A stretch of 64,000 nucleotides of DNA, taken from the NCBI RefSeq assembly GCF_963853765.1, contig NC_088858.1, positions 4,960,001 through 5,024,000 on the forward strand. The letters run 5' to 3'. The DNA comes from Magallana gigas (Eukaryota). Numbering within the stretch: the first letter of the stretch is position 1; the number at the start of each line of letters is the position of its first letter. This document shows positions 11,407-41,204 of this stretch, one piece after another. The translations under genes were made by a program, and so were the position numbers. The notes below the pieces were generated by a model. The model saw only the letters and a list, made by a program, of their open reading frames with translations. It did no database searches and was not told the origin of the DNA.

Positions 11407-14400
11407 TCAAAGAATGTTACAGGAGGAGGATTTCTTTTCTGAGCGAGTTCTAGCATCTTTAGATGGGCTTTGGTCAGACACTGGGGGTATAAACTCCGAC
11501 TCCTGGGGCGGATTGTTTGGAGAGGTAGTTAACTCTGGTGCCGTGTCAGGATCCTTGGATTTCGTGTCCTCCTGGGGCGGATCGTTTGGAGAGGTAGTTA
11601 ACTCTGGTGCCGTGTCAGGATCCTTGGATTTCGTGTCCTCCTGGGGCGGATCGTTTGGAGAGGTAGTTAACTTTGGTGCTGTGTCAGGATCCTTGGATTT
11701 CGTGTCATCCGGGAGCGGATCGTTTGGAGAGGTAACAGGCGCGTGTTCTCTGTCTGGCTTTGCATCCTCCTGGCGCGCACTGCTTTGTAGTGGAACCGGT
11801 GCTTGTTCTTTGTTTGGGTCGTTAGACTCGTCAGCCGTCCGAGGAAGTCTTGAATTATCAAAACTCTGAGGTGTATCAGTCATCTTTACCAGACACTTTA
11901 AAATGAAATTAGAATCAGAACATATACTAACGACTTGATCAGTATACATACATACAGGGTGTCCTATCTTATCTGATACCATTGGAAATTCATATAAATT
12001 AAATGTTTGGTCAAATCTTGTAACTTCTAACTCAAATAAAAAGTAAAATAGTTAATTTCTTTTCCAAAAAAAGTTTAAAGAAAAACGTGCTTTTCATTGA
12101 ATTATGATGTCACAAAGTTGCATCACATTTCTTTGGTTGAATTGAATTGTATTCAAGATTGATCGAACAAGAGAGCAGGCATCTTCCGTTTTAAACCTGT
12201 ATTTTCAAACACCGTTTCCAGATATAGCTGCACGAATAATGAAAAAAAAAATACTCTGGGGAAAAAAAATCAACAAGGAACATATTCTTTAAATAGTGAG
12301 AGGATTTGAGGAAATTAGATCATTACAAATGGGATGTTGTGAGGAATTTTACTCATCCAATTGACATTGTTATTGATAAAAAGGACGTCATCTAGACACA
12401 CTCTAATTTTTGTTGTGGTTTTATAAACAATGCTCAGTTTGTCAAAAAGAAAATGGGGGAATAAGATAGCGCAAATGCCCATTGGTTCAGTCGTGAAATA
12501 CATGTACCATTTTGAATTTATTTTTTCCTATTTAAATTCATTCAAATATATTATAATACAAGTTTGCAAAAGCTCAATTTCTAACTATATTCAGGTTTTA
12601 ATATAATTAACAAACGACAAGAAAAAAATATTGCCTTAAATTTTGGTGGTATCGAACCCATAACATAAAAACCCTCGATGTACAAGGTTAGTTTATGACA
12701 GGTGCTCTAACCACTGAGCCATTTCAGACACAACAAAGTATGTTGTTTAAATGTTAAGTGTGACTTTGGCCACGAATTTACGGACTTGTATTATTTTTTC
12801 AAAACGTTCAATTGTTGGGATACAAAATGATATTTTTAATGTATAGTGGGTCATCTCTCCGCATTTTTGTTGACCGAAATCGGTTTGTTTTCCATTAGAC
12901 CTTATTTAGACTATGAGAAAAATATGGAGCTCACACCCACTCTAGGAAAGAAATTGTCTTGAAGCTCTGAAAAATGACACTATTTGCAGGTTTTGATACG
13001 TATACGCCTGTTTGAGTCAACATATTCCAAGTATTGAACATATTTATAGGTTACAAATCAATGATATGTTAAATATATTTTGTTTCAATGATTATTTTTT
13101 TTTTTAAATATCAGATTTATTGATATTTTAATTTTTCAGTAGCTTGTCCGACCGTGTATGGGCATTTTACACGACTTATCCACCCATCTTCTTATGAATG
13201 TCTGTGAAATTTGCTAAGTGAAAATTTACATCAGAAACATTTAAGAAAATGCGTTTGACCTTTTGTTAAATAAATTTAATCAAACGTTATTTAAAGAATA
13301 TATGGTATCAGCTACTCTGGGACACCCTGTATGTACCGACTTTATTAAATATGATTTTAAAATACCGGTAAGTAAACGTTGATCTAAAGTGAATATAATT
13401 ACCTGGCTTAGTTCTAGCGGGACTGCTGAATTCTCTTGAATTCCATTTACAATGATTGGTGATGGTTTAGCTTGGGTAAGACTGTAACGAATAAAACTGA
13501 AATATAGGATTTGATTTATAACAGGCTTAATTCTACAAAGCGACATCTGTGTCTTACTTGAGTTAATTCTTTGTACAAACTTTTGTAGTTTTAAGTATCG
13601 AACCAACATAACACGAAATAAATATTAAAATTAAATGTTAATGGAAATATGATATAATTTTAAAAAGAAAATACTTTAACAACAAATTTGCGTGACCTTA
13701 AAATTGTGAATTTTACGAAATCAAAAGTAATACCCGCAAATATTAATGAATCAAAATTATGTAATTGAGCAATTTGAAAAAAAAAATCGATTAAGGAGAT
13801 GATGAGCAACGTCAGTCGATAAATCATGGACACACTTTTAATTTGGAAGAAAATGTACTAAATTGAAGCATATCTCGAACGTTTTACAATCTTTGAAAAA
13901 ATTATTCAATCATTAAAAATCATCAGGTTAAAAAATGGAAAAATGTTTGTTTTCAAGTGAAAAAAAAGATTGGAATGGCTTTTTTTTACACATTGTATCA
14001 TAAAACGAACGGCCGAGGTGACAAATCAAATATCAAACATGTATACGGTTATGGTATACATTTACAATATTTACAGTTCAATATAAAGAATAAGGATCGA
14101 ATCATTCTTTGAATATTATGAAGTGGTCAAATACGATCGGGCGTGATCAAAGCCCGAAGGACATTATCAAAGATTTGATCAACCCCGAATGTATTTGATT
14201 ACCATATAAAGTTAACAGAATAATTCCTTATTACTATATTTATATAATTTCAACAATTGTTCACTTAAGTTACTGACATTGTTACATTATTTTCATTTTT
14301 ATAGTTATGCAAACCCCGTTCGTGTCCCACAGTGCATCATTTTCGTCATTTATGAAATGTATTTGACAAAGTTAACGTAACAAATCTGATTTGTAGTGTT

Positions 14401-17400
14401 GTAACAGGCAAGAACAAGAAACATGTAAATATACTGAAATGAGTAAATTGTACAAAACATACCCAGCAATTTCAAGCAAAATGTCGTCCGCTAGTTTGGT
14501 CATGGCTGCAAAATCTTGTGATCTGTATGTAAAAGACCCCTGCAGATCCCTTAAAGACAGTTTCACAGTTTTTGTTGATTCTGTGAACATACCGTTCCAA
14601 AATGGGTCCCCTAGATTGATATCAATGGGTAGTAAATGTGCGAATGAAGGTTTATCCGCGAGCTGGGAGGCCTGACACAAGTACAGAACCTTCCTCCCCC
14701 GCTCGTTTCTCTGGCGGATTATGGATATGAAGAGTTCCTCCAAGTGGTGAGGCGATTCCAGATATTGATTCGATAAAAACACTACAATTTTTTGAGACGT
14801 TTGCAAACACTTTAAGTCAGTGCCTGTCCTGTCAACTATAAGACTGGTCTGAATATCCGGGCTTTTCTTTTCTAGCTGGTACAACAAACTAGTGGCCAGG
14901 GAAAGGTCGTTCTGACTGACACTAACTACCACGTGATTCTCAGACTGGTTCAGCGGGGGCACAGAAAAAGAGGATTTCCTCTCCACGCTGTTTGTTCTTA
15001 TATTATATGAATCATACACCTCTTTTTTTCTGATTTCAGACATTCTCTTAAAATCAAACAGGGCGACCTGAAAATCAATCCAAAAAGTAAACAGAAATGG
15101 TGAAATGTTAAATAGAAAGGAAAGAAATAACTCTTTTAAAATAAAGTCTCACCTTTGATGCTGTGTTAGAGCAGTACTTTGGCCTTTTATTTGCTTTAAC
15201 CCAGGATGCAACATCTTTAACAAGACTTGGAATCAATTCACTATACTGGTTTCCTCTAAAGTCTACAAGCCTGTGCTGACCATAAAGGCATGGAACAGAA
15301 GGAATGTCCTCGATACACACAGGAATCAAAAGTAAATTATCGGCCTAAAACGGGTAAAAAAGTCATCAAATCATAATCCTTACGGTTAACAATTTTTTCG
15401 GTTTAGCTAATGAAGTCAAAGATTGACCTAAACAGCTTCAACGTTAAATAATGATATCTCATTATTAGTGAAAAATCTCAAAAGGACGTTAAACAGTAAA
15501 CAGTCAGCAATCAGACTTATTCAAATTACACGGTAAACTTGAACAATGTTGGACTATTTTCTGTAAGCAATATAATTCTAATTTGTCAGGGCTGATGTGA
15601 TATACTTGCTTTGTTTTGACTGCGATACATTGCGATGTTGAACTCTTCCTGACAGACCACAGACGAAAGGTAACTAGGCGACACTAGCGCCACCACACAC
15701 TTGACGGTGTCCAGAGAGTAGTACAGGCCTTTCTGCCACATACCGCCTATGTCACAGAAATTTCAAAAGATGACGTTATAGATTTTACACTAATTCTGCC
15801 TAAAAAATATCTCTGTAATGTGCAATTTAGTACTTCTCTTCTGACGCTTACGCCGAACCATGTAGGCCTATATAATTTAATTCTGGTTGTAACGCGCTTT
15901 CTGATTGGCTAAAAATTATTTTATATCGTATAAAGAATGTTGCCTACGTCATAGTAAGACTAACGTCAAAAACGTATCAATACGCCTGACGTTACGTTTG
16001 AATTTTGTACAAATTTACGTCATTTTAAAAGTCAATTGACCGTTTTTATCAACAATGAAGAGTAATAAAATTAAATTATAAGCAATGAATTCAATATTTA
16101 TTAGTTTTAAACGATATAAAATGGTTTGAAACAGTTTACGCTTTTTTATAAACCGTCTCGCGGTTTATAAAGCGTAAACAGCCCAAAACCATTTTATATC
16201 GTTTAAAACAAATAACTATTGAATTCATTCCTTAAATATATTTAGGAAATAAACAACGTTATTTAGCGAACATGGCGTTATGAATAGCAATTGCTCTGTT
16301 GGCATATTCCATGATGCGCGCTAGCGCATCATGGAAGATATGCCAGCAGAGCAATTCCTATTCATAATGCCATGTTTGCTAAATAATCGTTGTTTATTAC
16401 TTATATTTGCATTTTACCACTCGCAAATACCCTGTATTAGCCTAGACCTAGACATTTAGGTATTGCATTCAGACTTTAATGTATCCTTTATGACGTCATA
16501 GTATACAGACAGAGCAATTGCGATTATAGAAAAATAATTGCAGTTCCTCTGCATAGGCTTATAGTGGGAAAGAACAATGGATATGCAAATATATGTTTAT
16601 GAACCATATAACGACGAACTACCAACCAGCTCCAACGTAGAATTTTGGTATGATTTTTACTGCAATAAAATAATTTTCTATTTTTAAGCAAAGAAAAAAT
16701 TCCAAATACATGTACATTAAATTTAAAATTTGATTATTTTTCTATATCTTAACAGACAAGCAGACATGCATCTTTTCGTTATCTTTTTTTTGTGATATTG
16801 ATTTAGTCTTATTTAAGGAATGAACTCAATATTTATTTGTTTTATACGATATAAAATGGTTTTGGGCAGTAACGCTTTATAAACCGCGAGGCGGTTTATA
16901 AAAAAAGCGTAAACCGTTTCAAACCATTTCATATCGTATAAAACTAATAAATATTGAATTCATTGCTTATAATTCAATTTTTGTACTCTTCATTGTTGAT
17001 AAAAACAGTCATTTGACTTTAAAATGACGTAAATGACCTTTCTTTAAAATGACGAAAAATTGTACAAAATTCAAACGCAATGTCAGGCGTATTGATACGT
17101 TTTTGACGTTAGTCTTACTATGACGTAGGCAACATTCTTTTTACGATATAAAATATTTTTTTTAGCCAATCAGAAAGCACGTTACAACAAGAATTAAATT
17201 ATTACCGGAGCGTATTAGTGCCAAATTGTTAAAAAAAAATCTTTAAAATTCCAACTTTGAAGTTGCAGGACATACCGACTTTTAAATCTTGTCGGTCAAA
17301 AAACACTTCCATATCAGGATACTGCTTCTCAAACTCGTCCAACAAAAGTTGGGCTTGCTTGGGATCTTTGTGAGCATACGAAATGAAGACGTCATGGTTG

Positions 17401-20400
17401 ACATTGTCGTCTGCTTGAGAGACATTACTTTCCCCACCCTCTGTCTCTGTCAGCATCAGCCGAGTACAGACCGACTCCATCTTCAGAGCAGGAGTGTCTC
17501 CTTCCTTCCTGACCCTAGAATACAGTCACCACAGAATAATCATGTAGCGCATTTATAGTATCACGTATTCGATTGCCGAGTGTTAAAATAGTTTTCTTCA
17601 TTTAATAACATATCGTACTTGTATGTACACATCAAACTGCCATCTTTAAAACTAAAAGATTGCAATAGTACTGAAACCAATTTGATTTATGATGCAATAG
17701 TAAGTTGTTAGTTTGCTATATCACTGAGGCAAGAACCGTACGTGATAATTTCTGTAGATGCCTTATTTTACGCGAGTATTTAATTCCGCTCTTTAACCGT
17801 TTTGCATCAAATCGTGACTCGAGAACATAAAATCGCGAACGCCAAATTTTTACTATAGTTGAATTTAGTTTACATTTGTCTGAAAAATAAAAGCGATATT
17901 TTAAAACCCACGAGATGTGCTTCTCAGGATTCTACGCGGATATTAGTTCTTCATGTCTTTATTAGGAATCAACAGTATACATTTGTAGGTAGCGAGATAT
18001 GAAAATGACCTCTAACCTGCAGTCCAGGAACTGGACCAAGCTGATGCTGACCGGTATAATCTGGATAGTTTCAAAGTACAGGGGCACCAGGAAATCTTTT
18101 CCCTTCCTCCGTGTGCAGCAAATGGCCATGTTAAACATTTCCAAACACTCGTCACTTTTGACAAAGTTAGGGGTCAACACTGGAACAATCCTGTCATAAT
18201 GGATCCAAAAGTTTAAGTTAAAGCTCTCTAAAACAACGTTTTAAAAGATGATTGCGTCATCATATAATGTAAATTTCTGATTCAGTTTAAGATTAGATAT
18301 GAATTTCTGATTCATTTTCAAATCAATTTTATTAACACAATCAATACAGATTCAGATTAGAATATATACAATTATAAACCTGACCCTAATCGCATCAGAA
18401 TAATTTCTATTTTAGCTGAAACGCTGCAGAAAACTGAACATCCGCTATTCACAAGTCATGAATTAAGGCATAGAAATTGCTAGACTCTATCAGAGAAATT
18501 GTTCTATATTCTTTATTAACCTTTTACTGCCCATCATCAGATCAAATATTTCCTGCTGCCAGACACCTTTCTGGTCAAACTTGGAGGGGTCGTAATAAAT
18601 GGACAGTTTATCGTTCTTGGCAAGGAGATTCTGCTTCAGTGAGGAAACTATCGTCGCGTCAGTTGGTTGATGCATCAGAAATATGTCATATTCTTTAACA
18701 GCTTGCCTCTACAGGGTGAAAACATTAATTCAAGGTTGAACGCTCGTTTGATAAGAAAGATAACTCATATTGGGAGAATTGGATGCTGTTCCGCAATAAA
18801 TGCAGAATTTTATGCGTTTTTATTCAAATTTAGATGCCGTTTAAAAATCTTTATCATTAAAAGGAAAATTAGTTATAATTGTGCATTGAGTTTGCGAACC
18901 TTGTGAATTACACGAAACGTCCACTAGCTGTTCAAGGATGCAGTACTAAGTTTCCAATTTTCTACTTCATATTTACCGTATGCATATTTTTCGTAGTGAA
19001 TTTACGGGATGTAGAAAAAAGACTGACCTTACGCTGAGATTTCAGGTGTGTTTGCTTTAACTTGGCGAATTTACTATTTAGCTCCTTGTTGTTGTCTTCG
19101 TATAGAACTATCTTTAACTTTTTCAGGGGAAGCCCTGCCTGGATCCAACTTATGGCGCCAGTAACTATTGATTGCAGCACTGTGATTTCGTCCGAGTACT
19201 TTAAATGAAAAAAAAAACCCCAAATAGACACATCATAGAAAATTCACTACATCTATCAGAATAAAGATGTGACATCAAATATTTTCCGCACCACCTACTT
19301 TAGGAAGGTGATCTATATTGATCATTAGAAATGCATTGAATCGGTTACTAAGTATATTTTGTCCCTCTATTTTGTCACCTCAGTCATTGATATAACATAC
19401 CTGAATACTAAAAAGTTACAACGATGCATAAGTGTCAGTCACCTATCATGATATCACGTGTGATTACCTGGTTTCCGGTAGACAGCAGTGGAGTTATAAT
19501 TGTTGTACTCTGGTTTTTCAGGAGAGGAACTAAGACCTTAAAGATATCTCTGATCTGTCGTTCCAGTGAGTTGTCGCTGCAACCTCTTGTTCTACATCAG
19601 TAAACATATCAATGTACACTCTCTGAGCCATAATTCTCAGAATGCTCAAGTTATTTTTCAGGGATTTTTTTTCTCACAATATCAATATATGAGTTTAGAT
19701 AGTTGAATCTTTAAAATATATTCCAGCATTATATTATTTTTTTACGTTTAACTGGGACTGAACATATCTTATTTAAAAACCAATAGCAATCATTTGGTAA
19801 TAAGGTAGGTATAATTTACATGGATATATCTGTACTTATTATCTGCCCCATGGTATAACGCCACTTTAAAATTCGATACTCTTAAATACCTCAAAGTTAA
19901 AACAATGTTTATTCAATAAAAGAAAACGTCATACATGTATATTTATTCTTTAAAAACGCCCCTCTTTCAAAATGGAATTTTGCATTGCCAACGACACGAA
20001 AGTACCCAGATGTTAAATTAAATTGAATTAAAAAAAAGATATCAGCAATCCACACAATGCAGACGTTTAATGTTTCCCATATAACCAGTTTCTTTGACAG
20101 GTATGTGTATTTTCGTTAAAAAATGTCAAAAAGTGACGGAAACGATATCTTGGGGCAGATTATAGTTTCTTCAGAATTTTAAAGACGCATGCAAAAAAAA
20201 CCACCAAATTGAATATATTTTTTCAATAAGATCAATTTTTCGATGATATCTAACTTTTCGAAACAGAGCAATCGTCCAAATGGCAGATCCAGTGGTAAGG
20301 GTTTAGAAAGCCAGCAGGAATAATGGGTCCGTAGGTCCATGTCCTTGTCTTTTGACAATTCCCGGGTGGAGATGCCAAGATTAGCGAAAAGAGCCCCAAT

Positions 20401-23009
20401 CAGAGTCCCTCTGGCGTTTGAATAATCACCTACAATACATATAAACGAAAACTGTATTGTTTCTAATTCAAATACAACGGCAATTAATCATTATTACATA
20501 AATGAGCACATTAATCTACCATATAAGTCATAATTATCGATATATATTTACATTCAAAAAGCAAATGCTTACTTTGATGATTCATGCGGGCTATGAAGGT
20601 AGCGATAACAAAATAAAGCTACTAACGCCGTGATGTATTTTTCTGCAATGTGACAACCTTCATACCCTCATGAGTCACCAAAGAAAGCATTTTATTGTTA
20701 AATTGTCTAGTATGTATTCAGAAAACATTGATTGTTTGGTTCTTATCACGTTAGTGTAACAGTATCACATTGTTAAATTTAGTGAACGTTTGGTTTAGAC
20801 TGACGTTATGATGTATTACCATGGTACAGAAGTTAGAAAATACTGGCATATGTATAACGGCATCATAGTGATACTTTTTTCGTAGTCTCTTATCCACGTG
20901 TCATAATACTCTGACATTCGTGTTACAGTGCCGTAGTGTAACATTTCGATTGACGTTGGTGTTATAATGACTAGTGTTACATTTGGATTGTGTTACAGTG
21001 TCATAGTGCAACATTTGGATTGTGTTACAGTGTCATAGTGTAACATTTGGATTGTGTTACAGTGTCATAGTGTAATATTTGGATCGACGTTGGTGTTATA
21101 GTTACTAGTGTTATATTTGGATTGTGTTACAGTGTCATAGTGTAACATTTGGATTGTGTTACAGTGTCATAGTGTAACATTTGGATCTACGTTGGTGTTA
21201 TAGTGCCATAGTGTTACATTTGGATTGTGTTACAGTGTCATAGAGTAATATTTGGATTGTGTTACAGTGTCATGGTGTAACATTTGGATTGTGTTACAGT
21301 GTTATAGTGTAAAATTTGGATCTATGTTGGTGTTATTGTGACATAGTGTTACATTCGGATTGTGTAAAAAGATCATAGAATAACATTTGGATTGTGTTAC
21401 ATCGTCAAAGTGTAACATTTGGATTGTGTTACAGTGTCATAGTGTAACATTTGGATCTATGTTGGTGTTATAGTAACATAGTGTTACATTTGGATTGTGT
21501 TACAGTGTCATAGAGTATCATTTGGATTGTGTTACAGTGTCATGGCGTAACATTTGGATTGTGTAACAGTGTCATAGTGTAACATTTGGATCTATGTTGG
21601 TGTTATAGTAACATAGTGTTACATTTGGATTGTGTAACAGTGTCATAGAGTAACATTTGGATTGTGTTACAGCGTCATAGTGTAACATTTGGATTGTGTA
21701 ACAGTGTCATAGTGTAACATTTGGATCGACGTTGGTGTTATAGTGACATAGTGTTACATTTGGATTGTGTTACAGTGTCATAGAGTAACATTTGGATTGT
21801 GTTACAGTGTCATGGTGTAACATTTGGATTGACATTGATGTTATTGTGACTTGGATTTTCTTTTAGATTGACGTTGTTGATATGGTCACATAATGTTACA
21901 TTATTATTGGTGTTGGTGTTGTATTGTCATAGTGTAATATTTGGATTGACGTATGTGTTATAGTGACATAATGTAACATTTGGTTTTACATTGCTGATAT
22001 ATGGCCATAGTTTTACATCCTAATTGATGTTTGTATTGTAGTCTTATATCGTTTCTTTTGGATTTATGTTAATGCTGTAGTGTCATAGTGTGCATTATAA
22101 TTGACCGTTTTATTTTGTAATAGTGTAACATTTGGATTAACAATGGTGTTGTTCCGTCTTACTATAATCTGTATCCAGTATTGTTTCCGTCAGATTTGAA
22201 CTAATTTAATAAAAATACTTATCAATATGAACAATGTACAGTTGAAACCGATGATATGAAAAATATCCAAGATATTTTCATTGGCACATCATTATTTTTT
22301 ACTCCGAAAAATTCACAGTATCATAGTGTAATATTTGGATTATCATCTCTGTTGTTGTATTATAGTGCGGCATTTGGATTGGTTTTGGTGTTGTAGTGTA
22401 ATAGTGAAACATTTGTTGAATGTTGATGTGTCATAGTGTTACATTTGGATTGATAATGTTGTTGTAGTGTCATAGTGCTACATTTGGATTGATAATGTTG
22501 TTGTAGTGTCATAGTGTTACATTTGGATTGACGTTGGTGTTATGTTGTCTTAGTTATACTTTAAAATTTAGGTTGACGTTGGTTTTACAGTATCATAGTG
22601 TAATATTTGGATTATCGTAGTTGTACATTACGCAGTGAACCATTTGGATTGACGTTAGTGTTGTAGTATTATACATAAACATTTACCAACATTTCTGTGA
22701 TATAATGTCAAAGTATTACATTTTGCAAAGACTTGGCAATATTGTTTGTGTTTGCATTGAATTTGGCGAAGATATATTGACATTTATTCAAAGCACTGTA
22801 CAGATTTCACGAATCAATTGACAGACTCTTCCCAATGTAATCTATGGTATTGACCTACCAATGAAGGCCGAGACCATGATGATGTCCATTTTCTCCTCCA
22901 CCGGAAGTTTGGTAATGTCCCCGTAACACAACTCCACGACGTGCTCTCCGAATGACGTCACTACAGAGATGGAGTCTTGGAGTCTGATGGCCTCCCCCCG
23001 CGCCTTCAT
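11407..23009 (-). CDS. Macro-like domain + three TIR domains + Pro/Asp/Thr repeat tail + CaaX protein (~907 aa). Exons 23009-22859, 20429-20255, 19591-19468, 19198-19028, 18708-18521, 18190-18017, 17514-17276, 15746-15610, 15344-15153, 15067-14463, 13481-13403, 11895-11407
   Basis: The 12 exons join in frame (2724 nt including stop) with AG acceptors and GT donors, except one GC donor. Macro-type motifs CYGDITKL, IMVSAF, GTLIGAL, TIITPLLSTGNQ. TIR1 YDIFLMHQ...IVPVLTPNFVKSDECLEMF; TIR2 DVFISYAHKD...FFDRQDLKVG...VALVSPSYLSSVVCQEEF; TIR3 HVVVSVSQND...IVVFLSNQYLESPHHLEEL. Ends SSCNIL*. An alternative upstream start at 23072 is possible; a likely 5'UTR exon ends near 24356. Confidence 0.85.
11495..11735 (-). 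repeat. Coding tandem repeat, 69-bp unit (23 aa TSPNDPPQEDTKSKDPDTAPELT), ~3.4 copies
   Basis: TTTGGAGAGGTAGTTAAC recurs at 11516 and 11585 (69-bp period) inside the last exon of the Macro-TIR gene. Confidence 0.9.
12645..12725 (-). mobile_element. tRNA-derived (SINE-head-like) segment within an intronic interspersed repeat
   Basis: The reverse complement has a Pol III A-box-like TGGCTCAGTGG and a B-box-like GGTTCGATACC, but no clean cloverleaf. A related A-box segment is at approx 36647-36680. Confidence 0.5.
15872..17202. repeat. Two ~370-390-bp copies of one interspersed element in inverted orientation (15872-16236 and 16811-17202), in intron 7 of the Macro-TIR gene
   Basis: The arms match as reverse complements over their length (e.g. 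GTTGCCTACGTCATAGTAAGACTAACGTCAAAAACGTATCAATACGCCTGAC vs its reverse complement near 17082-17134). Each arm carries an internal CGCGG/TTTATAAA hairpin. Confidence 0.85.
16248..16398. repeat. ~150-bp near-perfect palindromic element
   Basis: AATAAACAACGTTATTTAGCGAACATGGCGTTATGAATAG...CCATGATGCGCGCTAGCGCATCATGG...CTATTCATAATGCCATGTTTGCTAAATAATCGTTGTTTATT. Confidence 0.85.
20915..22670. repeat. Minisatellite, 32-bp unit GATTGTGTTACAGTGTCATAGTGTAACATTTG plus a 39-bp variant; homogeneous core approx 20975-21830, degenerate flank to approx 22670
   Basis: Tandem units are directly visible. The variant unit starts at 21183, 21318, 21453, 21588 and 21723 (135-bp period). Confidence 0.92.
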
Positions 23010-24132
23010 CCTGTAAACGTATCGTCGGAATTTGCCAAGTACTCGAGTCCAGGATAGTGTTGGAATTCTCATACGTTAGTCACTGTTGAAATTTTGCAAA
23101 ATGGTATGAAATCAATATCCTTGCTAATTAAATTAAATGATTTGTAAAGCGTAAACGGTTACAAATGCAGGCTCAGTAAAGCATACAGATTGAAAGTTCT
23201 GGCGAGCGTTTGCGAGATTCCGCTTTGCTGAACGGGTCTCGAGACGATTACACTTGTTTTCATCCGTAAAAATCGAGCATCCTTAACTTTTCAAACAATA
23301 TGATACATGTGTATACATATGTTAATGAAAAACTGACATGTTAAAATAAGATAATCTATGTTGATTTATATAATTCCTTAAAAAACATATTTCGTGTGTT
23401 GTGGGTAATGTAGTTAAAGCAAATAATCATAAGATTTCCTACTCTTGCAATATCGGCTAAATTGGATTGTTCAATCATAATATCAGGCATTTACAGATAT
23501 CACGGGATAATTTTGGTTTTCCTCACTAATCAGGTAAAAGTATTGGTATAAAAATTATGAAGACTGGGATCTCTTTATTTTCCCTTCCCTTCTGTCGTAA
23601 AAATAGTGAAAAATAAAATTCTCATTAGTTTAGAAGCATTCAGGAAATTCCACCCTGAGTCCATGTGTGTTAGGTTTCACTTTTTAAAAAATCTTAATAC
23701 ACATTAAAATTAGTATCTCTATTCCCGCTTTGTTCCATCCTTTATTTTCAAGGGCTTTGTCCAATTCTTCACTAACAGGGGCTTTGCCCCACCATTCTAT
23801 TCCAGGGGCTTTGCTCTATCCTTCACTTCAAAGAGCTTTGAAGCATCCCTTATAATTAATTAACTTCCAAAAGCTTTGCACTCTGGATCATCACCAGCAA
23901 TACATATTCCTTCTAAATTTTACAAAATTCACCACCTCCTGAGCCCGTACTGTGCAGAGTCTTAACTGGACCTACATGTACTAGGTCCTCATAGCGGGCA
24001 TTCAAGACTAAATGTCTTAAAATTAATATAGCCGTTTCTGAAATTGTTTGATCCACTCATAGGCATTTGTTTTTGCAACAGATGCATTATGTTATTATTA
24101 TGTATTAATAATTTTTCCGTACTCCGTAAACA

Positions 24133-25908: not shown

Positions 25909-28900
25909 TGATGAAGCAATATACAATCATGATGATGTAGTTTTTGGAACAACAGACCTAGAACAATGGGAGTTGTAGAGGGAACAGCCACCATGGTCGT
26001 GTTGATACCTACACAGAGGAGAAATGACACGTGTATTCTAATACAGGACAGGAGTAAATCTTTAATTAAAAAATGGCTTTATATTCAACAATGCATAATA
26101 AGTGATATAACAACTGAGACATAAACATGTTTGTTAAGTCTCTCTATCAAAAACTTGGACCCTACTATTCTAACATTTGAATTAAGCTATTATTTCAAAA
26201 GAGTTAGACCCAATGCATCATTTAGATAAGTATGTACTTCATAAAAATCCTACCATCACAAGCCGCTTTCTTCACATCTTCCTTCAATGTCTGCAGAGCA
26301 TCAAAGTTCTGGGCGTTGAACACATGGTTAGGGTCCGAGGCGATGGAGTTCAGCTCGGCCTTGTCCACACCAGATCCGACTCCGACAGCTACAACAGTTG
26401 CTCCTGTGGCCTTCAGCAGATTGGCCTGTGTCAAGGTCGCAGCCTTGTCGGTGGACGCTCCGTCGGTCAGAACGATGACGAACAGAGAGGAATTGGAACG
26501 CGCCCCGTTGGCTGACAGGATGTTGTGTTCCCGGATGTACTGTAGCGCCTCTCCTGTCTGTGTGGACCCCCCGACGTTGTCCGTCTGCTGAATGGCGTCC
26601 AATATCGGTCGCTTGTCAGAGAACTGGTTCAGGTAGAAGTTGTTCTGTACAGTGGAACCGAAGGACAGCACGCTGAACTGAACGTTGTTGGGGCCGACGG
26701 GAAGGTCCCTGACGAAGGTCTGAACAAAGTCCAGCTGTTTCTGGAAATTAACGGGGCCCTCACTGCCCGAGGAATCCACCGCGAATATTATATCGGCAGT
26801 TTGGATAAAACCGCAAGCTGAAAGAAATTAATGTCAGAATGATCATCTTTGCATTTCGACAACATTTCTACAAAATGATTTAAGAAAGCAAGCATCACTA
26901 TATCAGCAGACAGTAATATATGTAGTCATTACATTGATGTATTTTTTAGCCCGTATCAAAAAAGCAACTACATTTGACCTACTTTGACAAGAGGTGAATG
27001 TCAGTTCCGAGTTTAGCTTGTTCAGAACGTCAAAGTTGGCCACGGTGAACACGTGCTGGGGATCACTGGCGATGCTGTTCAACTCCTGGGTGTTCACTCC
27101 TGACCCGATCCCGATGGCTATCACCTTCATGTTCGGTTGTGATTTTAAGGCTGTGGCTTCCCGTTGTGTGTTGGCGTGACTGTAAATGAATCAGTCATAC
27201 TTTTCCAGTAACATTACAAGAGAACATAATGTCGTGTCACTATTAAAGAAATTATCATTTCATTTTGAAAACAATCAGTCAAATCGCCTTGTATCCATTT
27301 TTTTCGCTTAATTTGAACTTAATTAGTGTATGTTCTAAAATGTCTACTCTTATCAGGGTACGATAATTTTCATGATGTACTGTTGAACATCACATAAGCT
27401 AGGTGAGATTGGATAATCTGTGTAACAGTACTTCATTGACTGTCCGTCCGTCATCACTACTACGATCCGACTGGCGTTTGCTCGTCCACCGTGCGAAGGC
27501 AGGAAGGCGTACGTGCGGGCGTACTGCAGACCCTCATCCGTGTAAGTCGCTCCCGCGTCGTAGGGGATGCCAGAAATGGCTGCCAACAGAGCGGTCTTGT
27601 CACTGAACGAAAGAGGAGAAAAATGGATGGAATAATCTACCGACGGTAGAGTGTGTATTGTTACAGAATAAGTCAACACAAGATAAATGAATATATAAGA
27701 TGGCATTAGATTATTTACTCGCCTGTATTTGTTGAGTTTAATTCTTTCATGAACGTCAGAAGAAAACGTGGCTACTCCGATCTGTGCGTTGTTGGGTCCG
27801 ATGTCAAACTGTCTAGTGAAGTCCTGGACAAACGTAAGCATCTTCTGAAAGTTCAGTCTGGTCTCGCTACCAGAGGAATCGAGGAGGAAAACGATGTCTG
27901 ACAGTCCACTTCCACATTCTAGAGCCAATAAAAAAGGAAGCCAAATTTCCATTTTAAATTGTACGGGAAACTGCAACCAGGAACCTTTACTAAAATCATT
28001 GATATACAAGTATTTACAAGTGTATTTTTTATGATAAGACTATAGTGTTACAAAAGACTTCAAAAAGCCATTAATATACATGTACTCGTATAAATTTCCA
28101 TATTCTTCTTAAATAGAATATAATGAAAAAGACGTTCTTATGCCCTCTGAACACTTTGCGAACTACTTGCACATACCTGGAGAAATGACTGGTGGGTTAG
28201 GAACTGCAAAGAAAGAATTTCCAATTTATTTCAAAGGCACACGAGTGGATCAAGATACATTGCAGATTTCGTGAAAACGGTAAAATACATCCATACTTAC
28301 CAGCGCAGGCCGCTGTTTTGATCTCGTATTGGATTGAATTCAGGGCGTTGAAGTCGGTGACGTTGAACACGTGTTGCAGGTCCGTGGCGATTCCATTCAG
28401 CTCGGTCTGACTCACACTACTTCCAATGCCCACTGAAATGACCTTGACACCCATCCCCTTTAGGTCGTTGGCCTTTTGGATCGTTCTTGAGGTGGAGTAG
28501 GATTGGCCGTCCGTTAGAACAATAGCGATTTTCTGGGCGTTGGGTCTAGCGCCGTGGTGCGAGTAGAAGTGGAACTTGGCACTCGACAGGCCGGATTCTG
28601 TGTGGGTGGAGCCGCCAGAGTACTGGATCGTCTCCAGCTTGTGTAAAATGGACTGCAGGTCTTTGTATGTGTTGAAATAAAACTCACTTCGGCCGTAATT
28701 AGAAAAGGTTACCAAACCAAATTGAACGTGTTGTGGTCCAACTTGAAACCCCTTGATGAATTCGGCGGTGAAGTTGAGTTCTTTTTTAAAATTTTCCACA
28801 CCTTCACTACCTGATGCATCCAGAACGAACACAATGTCTGCTGGCTTGTCCCCACATTCTGAAACCAACATTAATCATATTTGTAACCGTTTCAGCTCAA

Positions 28901-31900
28901 TGTAAAATCATGCACATGTAACTGGATATACGTGAAATTGACAGTAAGTCAGAAAACGAGAACAGGGAATATATGTAGTTTACCTGTGTTTGGTTTCTCA
29001 TCTGCAAAAGAATTAACTTTTTTTTTACTATATCAAAAATTTAATTTACAACATTCTTTCTATGTATTATGAAAGAAAATTTACATGAAACACTTTTAAT
29101 CTCATACTTCTACATGTCTCAAGCTGTAGGTCCGTCTGTAAGGTGGACAGCGATTTGAAGTCGGTGGCGGTGAACACGTGGTTCCTGTCCGTGGCGATCA
29201 CCGTCAGCTCTGACTTGTGCACGTTTTGACCGATTCCTATGGTGATGACCTTGATGCCCGCGCGATGTAACTGGTCAGCCATGACAGCCGTAGCAGGGGG
29301 GTCCGTGGACTGGCCGTCAGTTAACACCACCAATATCTTTGGTACACTGGCGTCTCGAGCGCCATGTGCAGTAGTGAAACTTTCATTCTGAAAATAAAAA
29401 AAAAACGATTACCAGTTTCCAATTATATAATTAACAAACAGGAGACTAGTATTTTAAGTGGATAATCAAATCTTCTCTCGCCAGAGGGCGTTTTGCGCTT
29501 CGTTACATGACTCATTCATGAGTGGAGCGTTGCAGGTACGATACCTCTGAATAGATATTAGTGGATATAACTATGCTTATCTATTGTAACCAGACCAATG
29601 AGCCAGCTTTCTTACCAGTGCAAACTGCAGACCCAGGTCGGTGAAGGTACTGCCCGGGAGGTAGGGGACGTAACCCGTGGCGTTCACAAGGTCCGTCTTG
29701 TTCTGATATGTGTTGAGCCAGAAATAGCCGTGGGGTTTGGTGGAGAATGTAGCTAGACCGATCTGCACTGCGTCTGGTCCAATGTCAAATTTATCTGTAA
29801 AGTTCTGAACAAATTCGAGCTGATGTTGGAAATTGGTAGCACCCTCACTGGCCGAGGAATCCAGCAAAAACATGATGTCCGCCTTGTTGCCGTGGCAAGC
29901 TGCAATGAATTTTTAGAAACCTGGAGTATGTGATTTGAAATCTAATGGACACAAATAAAGCAATATGTATATTCCGTCGCATATTTTGTCGTTATTTTTC
30001 TTTACCATTATAGCCACATGTGGTGGTCTCAATATTCATCATCAGGGAGTGTAAAGCGTCAAAGTCGTCCACACGGTACACGTGCTGAGGGTCCGTGGCG
30101 ATGGCCTCTAGCTCTGCCTGGTTAGCTCCCTTCCCGATACCAATAGATATCACCTTAATCCCCATCTTGTGGAGTCTGTCGGCGGCGGCGGCTGTTTCTG
30201 TGGGCGTTGTCGACTCTCCATCGGTCAGCACGATCACCCACTGGTCCACGCCTGGCCGTCCGCCGTTGGAGGAAGAAAAACTGTTGTTGGCGATGTAATT
30301 CAAAGCGTCCTCTGTGTGGGTTGATCCCAGGTGGTGCCTGATGCTGGAAAGAGCACCCACGACTTGAGTTTTAGATGGGTATTTGTTCAGAGAGAATTCG
30401 GGATGTACTCTAGAGGCAAATGACACCACGCTGAATTGTGTTTCGTTTGATCCCACGTTGTACTGTCTGACGAGGTTTTTAATGAAGAGGGTCTGTTTTG
30501 AGAAGTCTGTGTATGTGATGCTTGAGGAGGAGTCCACGGCAAAGACGATGTCTGCGACCGCTGACTGGCAGTCTGATATTGCATGGAAACTAACATAATA
30601 AGCCGGTGCAAAACTATTTAAAAAACCTCATGTTTCTTATAAGCAAAATGACTGAAGTCGTAACTAACTTAGTCTATTACGAGGAGGAGGAGGAGGAGGA
30701 GGAGGCATGTGCAGAGTGTTAGGTATTAATAACGGGATACTTACGTAAAGCTGCTTGCTGACAAGCCGCGTTAGTGAGTTGGTTTTGGATAGTATTTAGG
30801 AGATCGAAATCTTGCACTTGAAACACGTGGTTTGAATCGCTAGCAATGGCCTCCAATTCAGAGTTTGACACGGAGTTACCAATACCAACAGCAATGACCT
30901 CCGCCCCGGAGGCATGCAAAGCCTGGGCCTGGGTGCTGATGTATAAAAAATGGTATTTATACTAATGAAGTTCATTGCTACGGTGTTTGATTGGGATTCT
31001 TAACTATTACATGTACTACCGGGGTAGTTGCTACCGAGTAAACGCACAATGAATTCGAAATGAATTCTAATATTTTTTTTAATTAATCCTTATATAATAT
31101 GATGAAATAATCGATGTGTCTCTATCGAGGCGAAACCCTCTTTTTCATTCCGCGTTTTTAGCAATGGTAATTTACATACAGGGTGTTGGCATGGCTTGAT
31201 GACTGGCCGTCGGTCAACACAATGACGATCTTCTCGGCGTCCGGTCTCCCCCCATGCTGGGGCTGGAACGAGACTGTCTGCGCATAACTGAGAGCCTTGT
31301 CCGTGTAGGTGGCCCCTGGTCTGTACGAGATCTTCTGGATGCCGCTTACCACGCCTGATACAGTCGAGTAGGTGTTCAGGTAAAACTCGTTGTGGACTGA
31401 CGTTGCAAACGTGATGACGCTGAACTGGGCGGCGTCCGGTCCGACGTTGAATTGGTTGACGAAGTTCTCCACGAATTGGACCTGTTTCTTGAAGTTGTCG
31501 CTCCCTTCGCTGTAGGATGCGTCCAGCAGGAACACGATGTCCAGCTTGGACCTGCATCCTGTAAATAATGCTTCATGTCTCAGTTAAATCTTACGTCAGG
31601 AAAGAACTATATATATAATTGTATTTAGAATACATACATGTATATGATTGACCTATTTGGTTTTTTTATGAGTTGAGTCACGCTTATGGGTTGAGGGGAG
31701 GGGCTTTTACTAGTAATGTTCATGTTAATCCTATTCACTAAATGTATATTGACGTTGATTAGACCAGTCATCGATCTTGAATGTTCGATTTCTAAGTTAT
31801 TGTGTCGGGACTAACGTATAGTATTATTATGTGTGTGCAGAATTTGTATTACGGTGCCAAGCCTTCGTCGGAGAACATTCGACAGAACTGTTAAATTCTT

Positions 31901-38984: not shown

Positions 38985-41204
38985 TCACACATGTTTTGTC
39001 GAACACAAAACTGAAACAAGAACAGACACAGTGAGCAGTTGCAATAACGTTAGTCTAAGTTGGTGTTGCGATGTCCCAGCGTTGATCTGGTTAAACGGAG
39101 GACACGGATAGTCCCTAGCCAGGAGCTCAGCCTCGTACACCACCGCACCAAACGGCCAGTCTGAAAGTCCATAGATATATACATATATAACATGTAGTTA
39201 CAATTTAATCGCGATTCCGGGAATTGAGCAATTTTACAAACTGAAGCAAGAGGATGGAATGATCGACAAATGTACCAATTTATGTTATAAATCAGATTTT
39301 TTTTCATTATTACAAATGTCCGCTTAATCTTACTCAAGGATTTTCCGTTGATATCTTTAAAAGAATAAATCCTCTTTGTGTTCACCGGAAATCCATAAGA
39401 AAAGGTAAGCAACTCTGTAATGTACAGCGCCATCATACAAGTATTGGAGCCAAATTCTGGAGGAACATTATACACAGATGCCGCATCATCTATAGTCTTC
39501 ATTGAAAAGAGAGAGGTAAAAAGTACTAGAGGATATCATGGCAAATTAAAATGTTTAAAATCTTCATTCATTTTGTTATCGATTGATACAAAATTAAAAA
39601 GATGCCATGTTGCCTTACCTTACTGCAATAGATATGTGCAGTTTTATTCAGCTTGTCAATATCAAGCCTCCCTGAAGAATCTGTAGCTTTCAAATCAGAT
39701 GCTACGAAGGCAAAAACAGCAACGGCATAGAATATGTCTGACCCAACGGAAGGCTGATAAATGGAGCCTATTGCACATGGCTTGGGATAACACGTGTCGT
39801 AAGAAAGTCTTAGAAAGTTTGATATGATCGTAAGGCACTCGGAGGGAGAACTGGATCCCCGGAATATCACAGTGGTGTTCCCGTACTCGTAACTGTAATT
39901 GTCATCTGAAACATACAGAATATACGAGTAAAATTCTCCAATGAATCAACACTATAAAAAGATCAGCCCCGAGACAGATAAGGAGGCTGATGGTCAAAAA
40001 ATTACCCATCAGCTCTACATATTAATATAAGTTTAAGACCTAAAATACCATACCTATTATTTAATAAAAAAAAATAAGCGTTCAAGTAAAATTTGAATAT
40101 TTTCCTATATCTTTATACAGAGTTTTCTTCTCAAGGAGATAAATATAGACTTAATATGGTTACAACCATTGAGCCCTCTTAACAGTTGGACAACACAACA
40201 ACTTTAACAAATACTAGTAACATGTTACCAGTGTGAGCTCTTACTCTTTAAAGAACAGGGATTAAGGATGTCGTAAACTTGTGGGTTCTGTTGTATGAGG
40301 TAATCTTTTACTCTCCTTTCCATGTAATCTTTTCCAAAATTCAAATAACTGTGAGAATATAGATTATATATTCTTCCAGAGATTCGAAGTGTAAACATAT
40401 GAGCTAGGAGAGGCCCGTCGGGTAAAAAGGTTATCTGCGTGGATCCGCCTCCCATTTCTAGGACGCCAACTGCTTTTGATAAGGATCTGAAAATGAAATG
40501 AAATGCATTTAACCGATTTTTAAATGAAAACGTCACATAACCCTTGTCAAACTGCTTTTCATCATAGACTAAAGATGACTTACTGGTGAGAAGAAAAAAA
40601 TCCATTATGATAGTTAGCAGTAATCCAAGCGAACACACCCTCCTCCTCGCCAGAGAGAATTCGGACACTCCTTTCACTATACACAAACCCGTGGTTCCTT
40701 TTGTCTGACAGTACATTTCGCACCATGTTCATCAAAGCAGTGGCCTTTTCTTCTTTTAAAAACCGGAGACCTAGTCATCATAGATAATTAAACTTATTCA
40801 TTAATTGATCATGTGATAAAGTTATAGTGTAATATTAGGAAGACCACGATAATTTGAACATCTGTGCATTATAACTTACCTGCAGTTGCCAGAAGATAGA
40901 TATGGGTTTTGTTATGACTACTGGAAGGCACTTGTGATTCGGCAATAGAGGTTATATTGAGAAGATACTTCGGAAGTAAATCTAAACTATCCTGAAATGA
41001 ACTCAATGAAGGTTTTATTCTTTGTGAAAAGGTCTCTGTTATTTGTAGCGTGGATGAAGTGGATTTTCGTTCCGGCCATGAATACACCCTGAGTTTGGTA
41101 CTAGAACTCCCGGCATCAAGCATGACACTATAGCGAACCGACACGGCGCATGCCCTGTCCACAAGGAAAAGGGTAGCCATACTGAATATGACATATGTAG
41201 TCAT
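38985..41204 (-). CDS. GDA1/CD39-family ecto-nucleoside triphosphate diphosphohydrolase (apyrase), six coding exons, with signal peptide and hydrophobic C-terminal tail
   Basis: All five apyrase conserved regions are present after splicing: ACR1 LDAGSSST, ACR2 LATAGLR, ACR3 LSGEEEGVFAWITANY, ACR4 LEMGGGSTQ, ACR5 NWPFGA. N-terminus MTTYVIFSMATLFLVDRACA. Ends INAGTSQHQLRLTLLQLLTVSVLVSVLCSTKHV* (stop 38985-38987). Confidence 0.92.

Follow-up and report, generated by a model that had tools for sequence, protein, structure and literature searches.

Macro domains bind derivatives of ADP-ribose (ADPR), and the TIR domains of SARM1, plants, and bacteria cleave NAD+ with a catalytic Glu that is located at a TIR–TIR (BE) interface. 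The two domains are paired in type II Thoeris, in which an ADPR derivative made by a TIR domain is read by a Macro domain; the partners are ThsB, a TIR protein, and ThsA, a transmembrane-Macro protein, and the signal is histidine-ADPR (PMC11204291; bioRxiv 10.1101/2024.01.03.573942). The window analyzed here is a stretch of 64,000 nucleotides from the oyster Magallana gigas (NCBI RefSeq assembly GCF_963853765.1, contig NC_088858.1, positions 4,960,001 to 5,024,000; all coordinates below are those of the window). One expressed gene on its minus strand, between 11407 and 23072, encodes a Macro domain, three TIR domains, and a C-terminal CaaX box on one chain. From the sequence features described below, we consider a membrane-tethered TIR module regulated by an ADPR-type ligand to be the best explanation for this protein, a reading that we favor tentatively and with somewhat less than even confidence.

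The exon chain was assembled from stop-to-stop frames and a splice-site listing such that all phases are consistent; the RNA evidence, which spans 14445–20440, consists of Logan contigs from three RNA-type runs of different studies together with raw poly(A) reads. Eight joints in these contigs (15065/15151, 15342/15608, 15745/17275, 17513/18016, 18189/18520, 18708/19028, 19197/19468, and 19591/20255) coincide with the borders of exons 2–10 and are found in contigs of three runs. One contig of 2551 nt contains all eight joints, with another 259 nt upstream of exon 2 and 286 nt downstream of exon 10; the 3′ overhang equals the 79 + 207 nt of exons 11 and 12 up to the start of a 69-bp repeat in the tail. 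Exon 11 and the acceptor of exon 12, which lie outside the RNA span, were positioned by orthologue alignment and splice sites. The coding sequence of this 12-exon model is in frame and comprises 2787 nt, which gives a protein of 928 aa if translation starts with the ATG at 23072; a start at ATG 23009, the position that matches the beginning of the orthologues, gives 907 aa. The original prediction, which had been made from the letters of the window alone, proposed 12 phase-consistent exons that encode a protein of approximately 907 aa from one undivided gene; the final model likewise has 12 exons and gives 907 aa from ATG 23009, and the RNA contigs join exons 2–10 in one transcript that runs on at both ends.

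Exon 1 is present as a single copy in the oyster genome (564 Mb, 29 contigs), and about one third of the sampled words of the stretch are present in the RNA runs, which we estimate to be approximately the exonic share. All of the introns are GT-AG except intron 8 (15609–15345), which is GC-AG with the donor gcaagt; its joint, found in RNA contigs of three runs, places the GC donor at 15609, and an alternative GT donor of exon 8 at 15606 was rejected, being out of phase. An 11-exon model in which exon 10 is joined to 11926 was ruled out by the orthologue alignment (a 26-codon exon is absent and the acceptor is different). At position 19198 the genome has A and all three RNA assemblies have G (plus strand), which turns the Tyr codon at the start of exon 4 into a His codon; this is likely a polymorphism, and the orthologues have Arg or Asn at this residue. 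In the closest transcript-derived orthologue, seven residues precede the sequence KMKARGE, and no 5′ exon encoding them was found upstream in the window; a further 5′ exon is possible because an AG acceptor is located directly before 23010.

The N-terminal domain is encoded by the first four exons. Exon 1 (22859..23072, with the ATG at 23072 or 23009) supplies the start codon and the first Macro strands, including the motifs GDIT (22922–22911) and VSAF (22874–22863), and ends with a phase 1 donor; exon 2 (20255..20429, with RNA junctions) encodes Macro loop 1 and its helix (GTLIGAL) and the invariant DLR...CW...CFE; exon 3 (19468..19591, bounded by the RNA joints 19591/20255 and 19197/19468) encodes a Macro helix and PLLSTGNQ (19491–19468), the equivalent of the diphosphate loop; and exon 4 (19028..19198, in RNA contigs) encodes the last third of the domain and a linker. 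The exon pieces are too short for Pfam, so orthologues were used in their place; where an uninterrupted sequence was needed, the stand-in was a transcript-derived protein from a related oyster (P0157) that is 75% identical overall and 88% identical in the N-terminal domain. No Pfam match was found in the N-terminal domain of either the exon pieces of the window or the full-length orthologues. When 62 family members were scanned singly, the threshold of Pfam Macro (PF01661) was not reached, with three of the 62 matching weakly (best e-value 0.002), and Pfam ThsA_Macro (PF20016) matched one of the 62 with an e-value of 0.16.

A profile of the 62 aligned N-terminal domains compared with all of the sequences in the PDB retrieves almost exclusively Macro entries; the best match is Af1521 (e-value 1.9e-4, in two colinear segments), and non-Macro matches (a relaxase, a designed protein, and IL-33 chains) appear solely at e-values >0.03. 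In this alignment, the GDIT of the family is matched with the GDIT of Af1521, that is, its adenine-contact motif, and TGNQG is matched with the diphosphate loop SAGIYG; the two motifs on which the original prediction had based its Macro-type fold coincide with their counterparts in a Macro domain of known structure. An AlphaFold2 model of the 62-member alignment has a mean predicted local distance difference test score (pLDDT) of 95.1 and a predicted template modeling score (pTM) of 0.91. With this model, Foldseek finds 261 matches in the PDB at e-values ≤0.001, led by macroH2A, Af1521, YmdB, and the macro domains of PARP14, PARP15, and PARP9 (for macroH2A, e-value 1.5e-10 and template modeling scores of 0.65/0.72). 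With VIA-align, the Z-score is 16.7 to PARP9 macro 2 with NAD+ (root-mean-square deviation [rmsd] 2.7 Å over 177 residues) and 16.4 both to Af1521 and to macroH2A1.1 with ADPR; the Macro domain of the Thoeris protein PcThsA (8v6s) has a Z-score of 13.3 and rank 46. A feature search of the ESM Atlas gave scores of at most 0.84, which we regard as leads only and which are consistent with Macro. The models and profiles together identify the N-terminal domain as a true Macro fold, of a family outside current models and with no specific likeness to ThsA; the first part agrees with the original prediction, and the specific kinship with the ThsA Macro domain that it had suggested is not supported.

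In animals and prokaryotes alike, the family keeps the following positions invariant or nearly so: the GD of GDIT, the Ser-Ala of VSAF, D-L-R, C-W, C-F-E, and the P...G of the loop; the protein in the window retains all 20 of the invariant or near-invariant positions in the 62-member alignment. Conserved positions of the predicted cleft ring, in the numbering of the window protein, are D52, S68, E129, and P164–G169, with G51-D52 (near-)invariant. In the model, the invariant positions appear to lie at the strand ends and loops that line the ligand cleft in macro domains. Where the MacroD NAAN motif has its catalytic Asn, the family has an invariant Ser (VSAF), and loop 1 has the form PGDY..G(T/S)LIGAL, that is, the Gly-rich loop is altered; because MacroD-type hydrolases need this Asn, the substitution favors binding over classical hydrolysis as the probable function.

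The TIR domains follow in exons 5–10, all of which are supported by RNA contigs. TIR1 is encoded by exon 5 (18521..18708, first half) and exon 6 (18017..18190, second half, with ECLEMF at 18150–18133); a disordered TIR1–TIR2 linker and the start of TIR2 (DVFISYAH) are encoded by exon 7 (17276..17514), the TIR2 core with the end of the BB loop and CQEEF (15654–15640) by exon 8 (15610..15746), and the end of TIR2 by exon 9 (15153..15344); exon 10 (14463..15067) encodes a linker and the divergent TIR3, with HLEEL at 14746–14732. After TIR3, exon 11 (13403..13481) encodes a conserved 26-codon segment (…PSPIIVNG…ELSQ) and was placed by orthologue alignment, with good acceptor and donor sites. The exon pieces of the window mostly give sub-threshold TIR matches in Pfam, the TIR2 exon alone passing the cutoff of 28 with 28.9 bits; in P0157, Pfam TIR_2 scores 49.7 bits for TIR1, 75.1 bits for TIR2, and 22.4 bits for TIR3. 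Using hhalign, TIR3 matches both TIR1 and TIR2 with a probability of 99%, and TIR1 matches TIR2 with 99.8%; these profile comparisons indicate that all three domains are homologous, in agreement with the three tandem TIR domains of the original prediction. For each of them, the score with the animal-type TIR model is far below that with the bacterial-type TIR_2 model.

The three domains differ at the position of the catalytic Glu. When TIR2 is aligned with AbTir (7uxr), the Glu of the AbTir motif Y-E-L, which we take to be the catalytic residue of that enzyme, is paired with the second Glu of CQEEF; among the 38 full-length members that we examined, all 37 aligned rows have this second Glu, in the form C-x-E-E-[FY]. 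At the same position, TIR1 has Gln in the family and Met in oysters (the Met of ECLEMF in the window protein), and TIR3 usually has Glu (including the window protein), with Asn in scallops; TIR3 also lacks seven residues of the BB-loop region. Judged by the alignments, a complete catalytic-type signature, that is, the Glu together with a full BB loop, is found solely in TIR2.

Exon 12 (11407..11895, stop codon at 11409–11407), which was placed by orthologue alignment, encodes a tail that is rich in Pro, Asp, and Thr and poorly conserved; the tail contains the predicted repeat, a 69-bp tandem unit in 3.4 copies (96% matches, 11500–11734) that is translated as 23-aa repeats. The end of the tail is conserved as ...KKSS(S/T)C-a-a-L; in the window protein it is KKSSSCNIL, with CNIL, the CaaX motif noted in the original prediction, at 11421–11410. 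A Caa[LFIM] terminus is found in 43 of the 77 family members of at least 700 aa, in five phyla, with octopus, nemerteans, Saccoglossus, and sea urchins among them, and the Caa(L) box is kept in molluscs, nemerteans, hemichordates, and echinoderms; the Lingula member ends in CCVS. A CaaX box with Leu at the X position directs geranylgeranylation. The protein is most likely cytosolic, with a long disordered tail that ends in a predicted geranylgeranyl-type Caa(L) box, by which it would be tethered to a membrane.

A search with the 57-aa sequence of exon 2 retrieved 207 cluster representatives among 1.84 billion proteins. The named full-length relatives have 700–1000 aa and the same order of parts, and they are found in bivalves, gastropods, and octopus, in the brachiopod Lingula, in the nemerteans Tubulanus and Lineus, in the hemichordates Saccoglossus, Glandiceps, and Ptychodera, in sea urchins, a brittle star, and crinoids, and in the coral Montipora. 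No vertebrate, arthropod, or nematode is among the named matches, the search for these groups not having been exhaustive; related proteins are also found in a haptophyte and a labyrinthulid. All of the named relatives are labeled ‘uncharacterized’ or ‘TIR domain-containing’, in agreement with the original prediction, which recognized no characterized gene with this architecture; the protein in the window is the oyster orthologue of an old, uncharacterized metazoan family. In a quick maximum-likelihood tree of the Macro domain (unrooted, supported by the Shimodaira–Hasegawa-like approximate likelihood-ratio test only), the eukaryotes are located on one side of a branch with a support of 90; the animal part approximates the species phylogeny, and the prokaryotic sequences do not group by taxonomy. 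This agrees with long vertical inheritance in animals and mobility among prokaryotes; the tree being without a root, we claim neither a donor nor a direction of transfer.

Some proteins related to the family have other arrangements. The flatworm Macrostomum has a protein with the same Macro-like domain that carries the UniRef name ‘VLIG-type G domain-containing’ (P0019); one protein has two tandem Macro-like domains (P0071); a Saccostrea gene model carries an additional, incomplete copy of the Macro domain at the N-terminal end, by duplication or model error (P0151); and a metagenomic protein of 715 aa has the arrangement HSP70-Macro-TIR (P0094).

The prokaryotic relatives are proteins of 330–400 aa with one Macro-like domain and one TIR domain on a single chain; the TIR-associated Macro-like domains of bacteria to which the original prediction had tentatively likened the Macro variant do exist. 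We confirmed 98 loci in a scan of one genome per species, that is, the proteins are present in at least 98 bacterial and archaeal species; these include isolates (e.g., Nitrobacter vulgaris, Thauera sinica, Nitrosomonas sp., Nostoc spp., Flavihumibacter solisilvae, and Agriterribacter humi) and, among the archaea, Methanocrinis and a metagenome-assembled genome (MAG) of Promethearchaeota. One relative, a TIR protein, is encoded on a 1.2-Mb MAG contig with the annotation Candidatus Xenobiia. The prokaryotic proteins are 30–46% identical to TIR1 and TIR2 of the oyster type and approximately 35% identical in the Macro domain; the signature ‘...P.YM...QY.DCR’ is common to the prokaryotic and oyster-type TIR domains, and the Glu is invariant in the prokaryotic relatives. 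Taken over both domains, the identity is 30–45%; the Macro-TIR core of the animal family is homologous to the prokaryotic single-chain Macro-TIR proteins.

The prokaryotic Macro-TIR genes are mostly stand-alone, and no conserved partner gene was found in most of the 80 loci that we compared. Their neighbors are typical of conflict systems and include NACHT-WD40 and TIR-NACHT-TPR proteins of the STAND class (signal transduction ATPases with numerous domains), HipA, McrB-like AAA_5 proteins, and PD-(D/E)xK and FokI/Mrr nucleases. In a subset of Bacteroidota, the Macro-TIR gene belongs to a conserved operon, in which a gene for a patatin-like phospholipase is followed by genes for a TPR-S/MAP3K_TRAF_bd protein, an unknown protein of 226 aa, Macro-TIR itself, a TIR+CarboxypepD_reg protein, a protein of the outer-membrane-like kind, and one more TPR-S protein; this order is found in Agriterribacter humi (L079:2728–11424), in loci L075 and L065, and in approximately nine other Bacteroidota loci, and the operon is a candidate multi-gene conflict system. 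PADLOC and NCBIfam match the TIR parts alone (PDC-S66, SAVED-TIR, ThsB, retron-TIR, and others); no model in PADLOC, NCBIfam, or Pfam covers the Macro part, and no named defense system applies. A literature search on Macro-TIR terms found no paper.

The likeness of the family to type II Thoeris is of a general kind, that is, a TIR domain paired with a Macro domain, prokaryotic roots, and conflict-system neighborhoods. In both animals and prokaryotes, the Macro and TIR domains are on one chain, in contrast to the two-gene ThsA/ThsB pair; the oyster protein also lacks a transmembrane effector or pore part, having instead three TIR domains and a prenyl anchor signal, and its Macro domain is closer in fold to macroH2A1.1, Af1521, and PARP9 than to ThsA. 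Like SARM1, the protein is an animal TIR protein with a catalytic-type Glu and an N-terminal domain that could bind an NAD+-related metabolite and gate the TIR domain, and it is neither a receptor nor a MyD88-type adaptor; unlike SARM1, the full-length orthologues have no ARM or SAM matches, the putative sensor is a Macro fold, three tandem TIR domains are present where SARM1 has SAM-driven octamers, and the chain ends in a lipid-anchor signal; in sequence, TIR2 matches the SARM1 TIR domain marginally (e-value 0.8–0.9). With macroH2A1.1, Af1521, and the PARP9/PARP14 macro domains, the Macro domain shares the fold (Z-scores of 16–17, rmsd 2.7–3.0 Å, approximately 177 residues), the Asp of GD(I)T, and the (S/A)TG loop; it differs from them in its low sequence identity (11–16%, and under the Pfam Macro threshold), in the Ser that replaces the Asn of NAAN, in its own invariant D-L-R, C-W, and C-F-E motifs, and in being always fused to TIR domains.

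TIRAP/MAL is likewise a membrane-targeted cytosolic TIR protein (the targeting is predicted in our case), and TIR2 matches the TIRAP TIR domain with an e-value of approximately 1e-3; the oyster protein differs from it in having a CaaX box where TIRAP has a motif that binds phosphatidylinositol 4,5-bisphosphate, three TIR domains and a Macro domain, and prokaryotic relatives. In addition, the family may be among the ecTIR-DC families of Gerdol et al. (2017; cited in PMC6321704 and PMC6836662), with which it would have in common a cytosolic protein with multiple TIR domains that is conserved in invertebrates, with no vertebrate among the hits seen. The ecTIR-DC catalog may have overlooked the Macro domain because standard domain tools do not detect it.

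In the membrane-tethered module that we favor, the Macro cleft would bind an ADPR-type ligand and control the TIR domains allosterically. TIR2 would be the unit that cleaves NAD+ or makes a signal, because it is the sole TIR domain with both an invariant catalytic-type Glu and a full BB loop; TIR1 (with Gln or Met in place of the Glu) and TIR3 (with the BB-loop segment deleted) would be non-catalytic partners that provide in cis the TIR–TIR contacts that single-TIR enzymes gain by oligomerizing. In innate defense, the protein could then act at the membrane by consuming NAD+ locally or by producing an ADPR-derived messenger. A signal written by the TIR domains of the protein and read by its own Macro domain may be one of several possible couplings. 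A broader proposal, which we regard as doubtful, is that animals retain a self-contained NAD+/ADPR immune module of the prokaryotic type, in which the Macro domain detects an ADPR-type danger signal and switches on a TIR2 NADase or cyclase at the membrane, and that the prokaryotic Macro-TIR proteins are an undescribed single-gene anti-phage system; in that module, the danger signal may be a product of viral or PARP ADP-ribosylation or a nucleotide made by a TIR domain, either its own or that of another TIR protein.

Several observations weigh against a ligand-regulated TIR enzyme. The best sequence matches of TIR2 in the PDB are to scaffold TIR domains (TLR15/TLR2, e-value 5e-7, and TIRAP), which rank above AbTir (e-value 2.5e-4); IL-1RAcP is likewise among the best matches. 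When aligned with TIR2, TLR2 has the same Glu, and TLR2 is not a known NADase. The AlphaFold model of the full-length protein has confident domains and a pTM of 0.55, so the arrangement of the domains is unreliable and the TIR contacts in cis are a conjecture. Also, because the Macro domain lacks both the Asn of NAAN and the triple-Gly loop, its ligand may differ from plain ADPR. The scaffold matches are equally what would be expected of our main alternative, which we judge rather unlikely, that is, a non-enzymatic membrane sorting adaptor that resembles TIRAP, whose TIR domains would bridge the TIR domains of TLR/IL-1R-type receptors and downstream adaptors with no cleavage of NAD+, and whose Macro domain would recruit the complex to ADP-ribosylated proteins or sense ADPR as a modulator. 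TIRAP/MAL is placed at the membrane by a lipid-binding motif, and the anchor is conserved in the oyster family; oysters have very large TLR repertoires; and two of the three TIR domains lack part of the catalytic signature. However, an adaptor leaves unexplained why the Glu of TIR2 is kept in every aligned member and is also invariant in prokaryotic relatives that have no TLRs, and why the TIR domains score far above the animal-type model with the bacterial-type TIR_2; the fusion to a nucleotide-binding Macro domain in prokaryotes also argues for NAD+/ADPR chemistry.

The Macro domain could instead be an enzyme that removes ADPR from proteins or nucleic acids or degrades the product of the TIR domains; the protein would then either limit the signal that it generates or erase viral or PARP ADP-ribosylation. 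Its structural neighbors include the hydrolases Af1521, YmdB, and OiMacroD, and four polar residues that are invariant and specific to the family (Asp103, Arg105, Cys110, and Glu129 in window numbering) are candidates for a new active site; however, the replacement of the MacroD catalytic Asn and the alteration of the Gly-rich catalytic loop, together with the presence of non-catalytic binders (macroH2A1.1 and the PARP9/14 macro domains) among the closest folds, makes this improbable. That the architecture is an artifact of the gene model, that is, two neighboring genes or a decaying pseudogene read as one, would be suggested by the start codon and exons 11–12, which are outside the direct read evidence; however, a single RNA contig reaches from exons 1/2 to past exon 10, with evidence from independent studies, the coding sequence is open and in phase, and orthologues with the same colinear architecture are present in many phyla, so we give this explanation hardly any credence. 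On balance, we retain the membrane-tethered, ligand-regulated TIR module as the best explanation.

The introns of the gene and its surroundings contain additional features. Three intronic stretches (15845–17244, 17645–18044, and 20045–20244) have very high summed contig depths (hundreds to thousands) in the RNA runs, with numerous variant letters and with loose ends on the two strands alike; the probable source is dispersed repeats that are transcribed, or fragments of transposons, separate from this mRNA. Intron 1 contains minisatellites at 20972–21831 (32-/135-bp unit in 25/6 copies) and 22317–22541 (39-/71-bp units), and the open reading frame (ORF) fragments with ‘HYDTVTQSKC’ are translations of these minisatellites, non-coding for the Macro-TIR gene. 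A gene with multiple von Willebrand factor A domains is located directly upstream of the Macro-TIR gene, at 26222–30537 on the minus strand; it has at least four exon-sized ORFs, each of which encodes one such domain (e-values of 1e-31 to 1e-44), and it occupies the GC-richest part of the window (43–45%). Farther away, a fragment of a GDA1/CD39 nucleoside phosphatase is located at 40225–40716 (minus strand, e-value 1e-10), and a retroelement, seen as an ORF of 473 aa that contains a reverse-transcriptase domain, is located at 56243–57664 (plus strand).

Bacterial Thoeris and plant TIR signaling suggest that animal TIR proteins other than SARM1 might also perform NAD+-derived immune chemistry. 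The family described here is a tractable candidate, being single-copy in the oyster, distributed from cnidarians to ambulacrarians, and provided with a predicted lipid anchor and prokaryotic counterparts. It is also a sizeable, always TIR-fused Macro family that is missed by the current Pfam, NCBIfam, and PADLOC models; therefore, both catalogs of invertebrate immune genes and defense-system finders may miss it. If the broader proposal of a self-contained immune module is true, the family would constitute a second animal TIR enzyme pathway besides SARM1.

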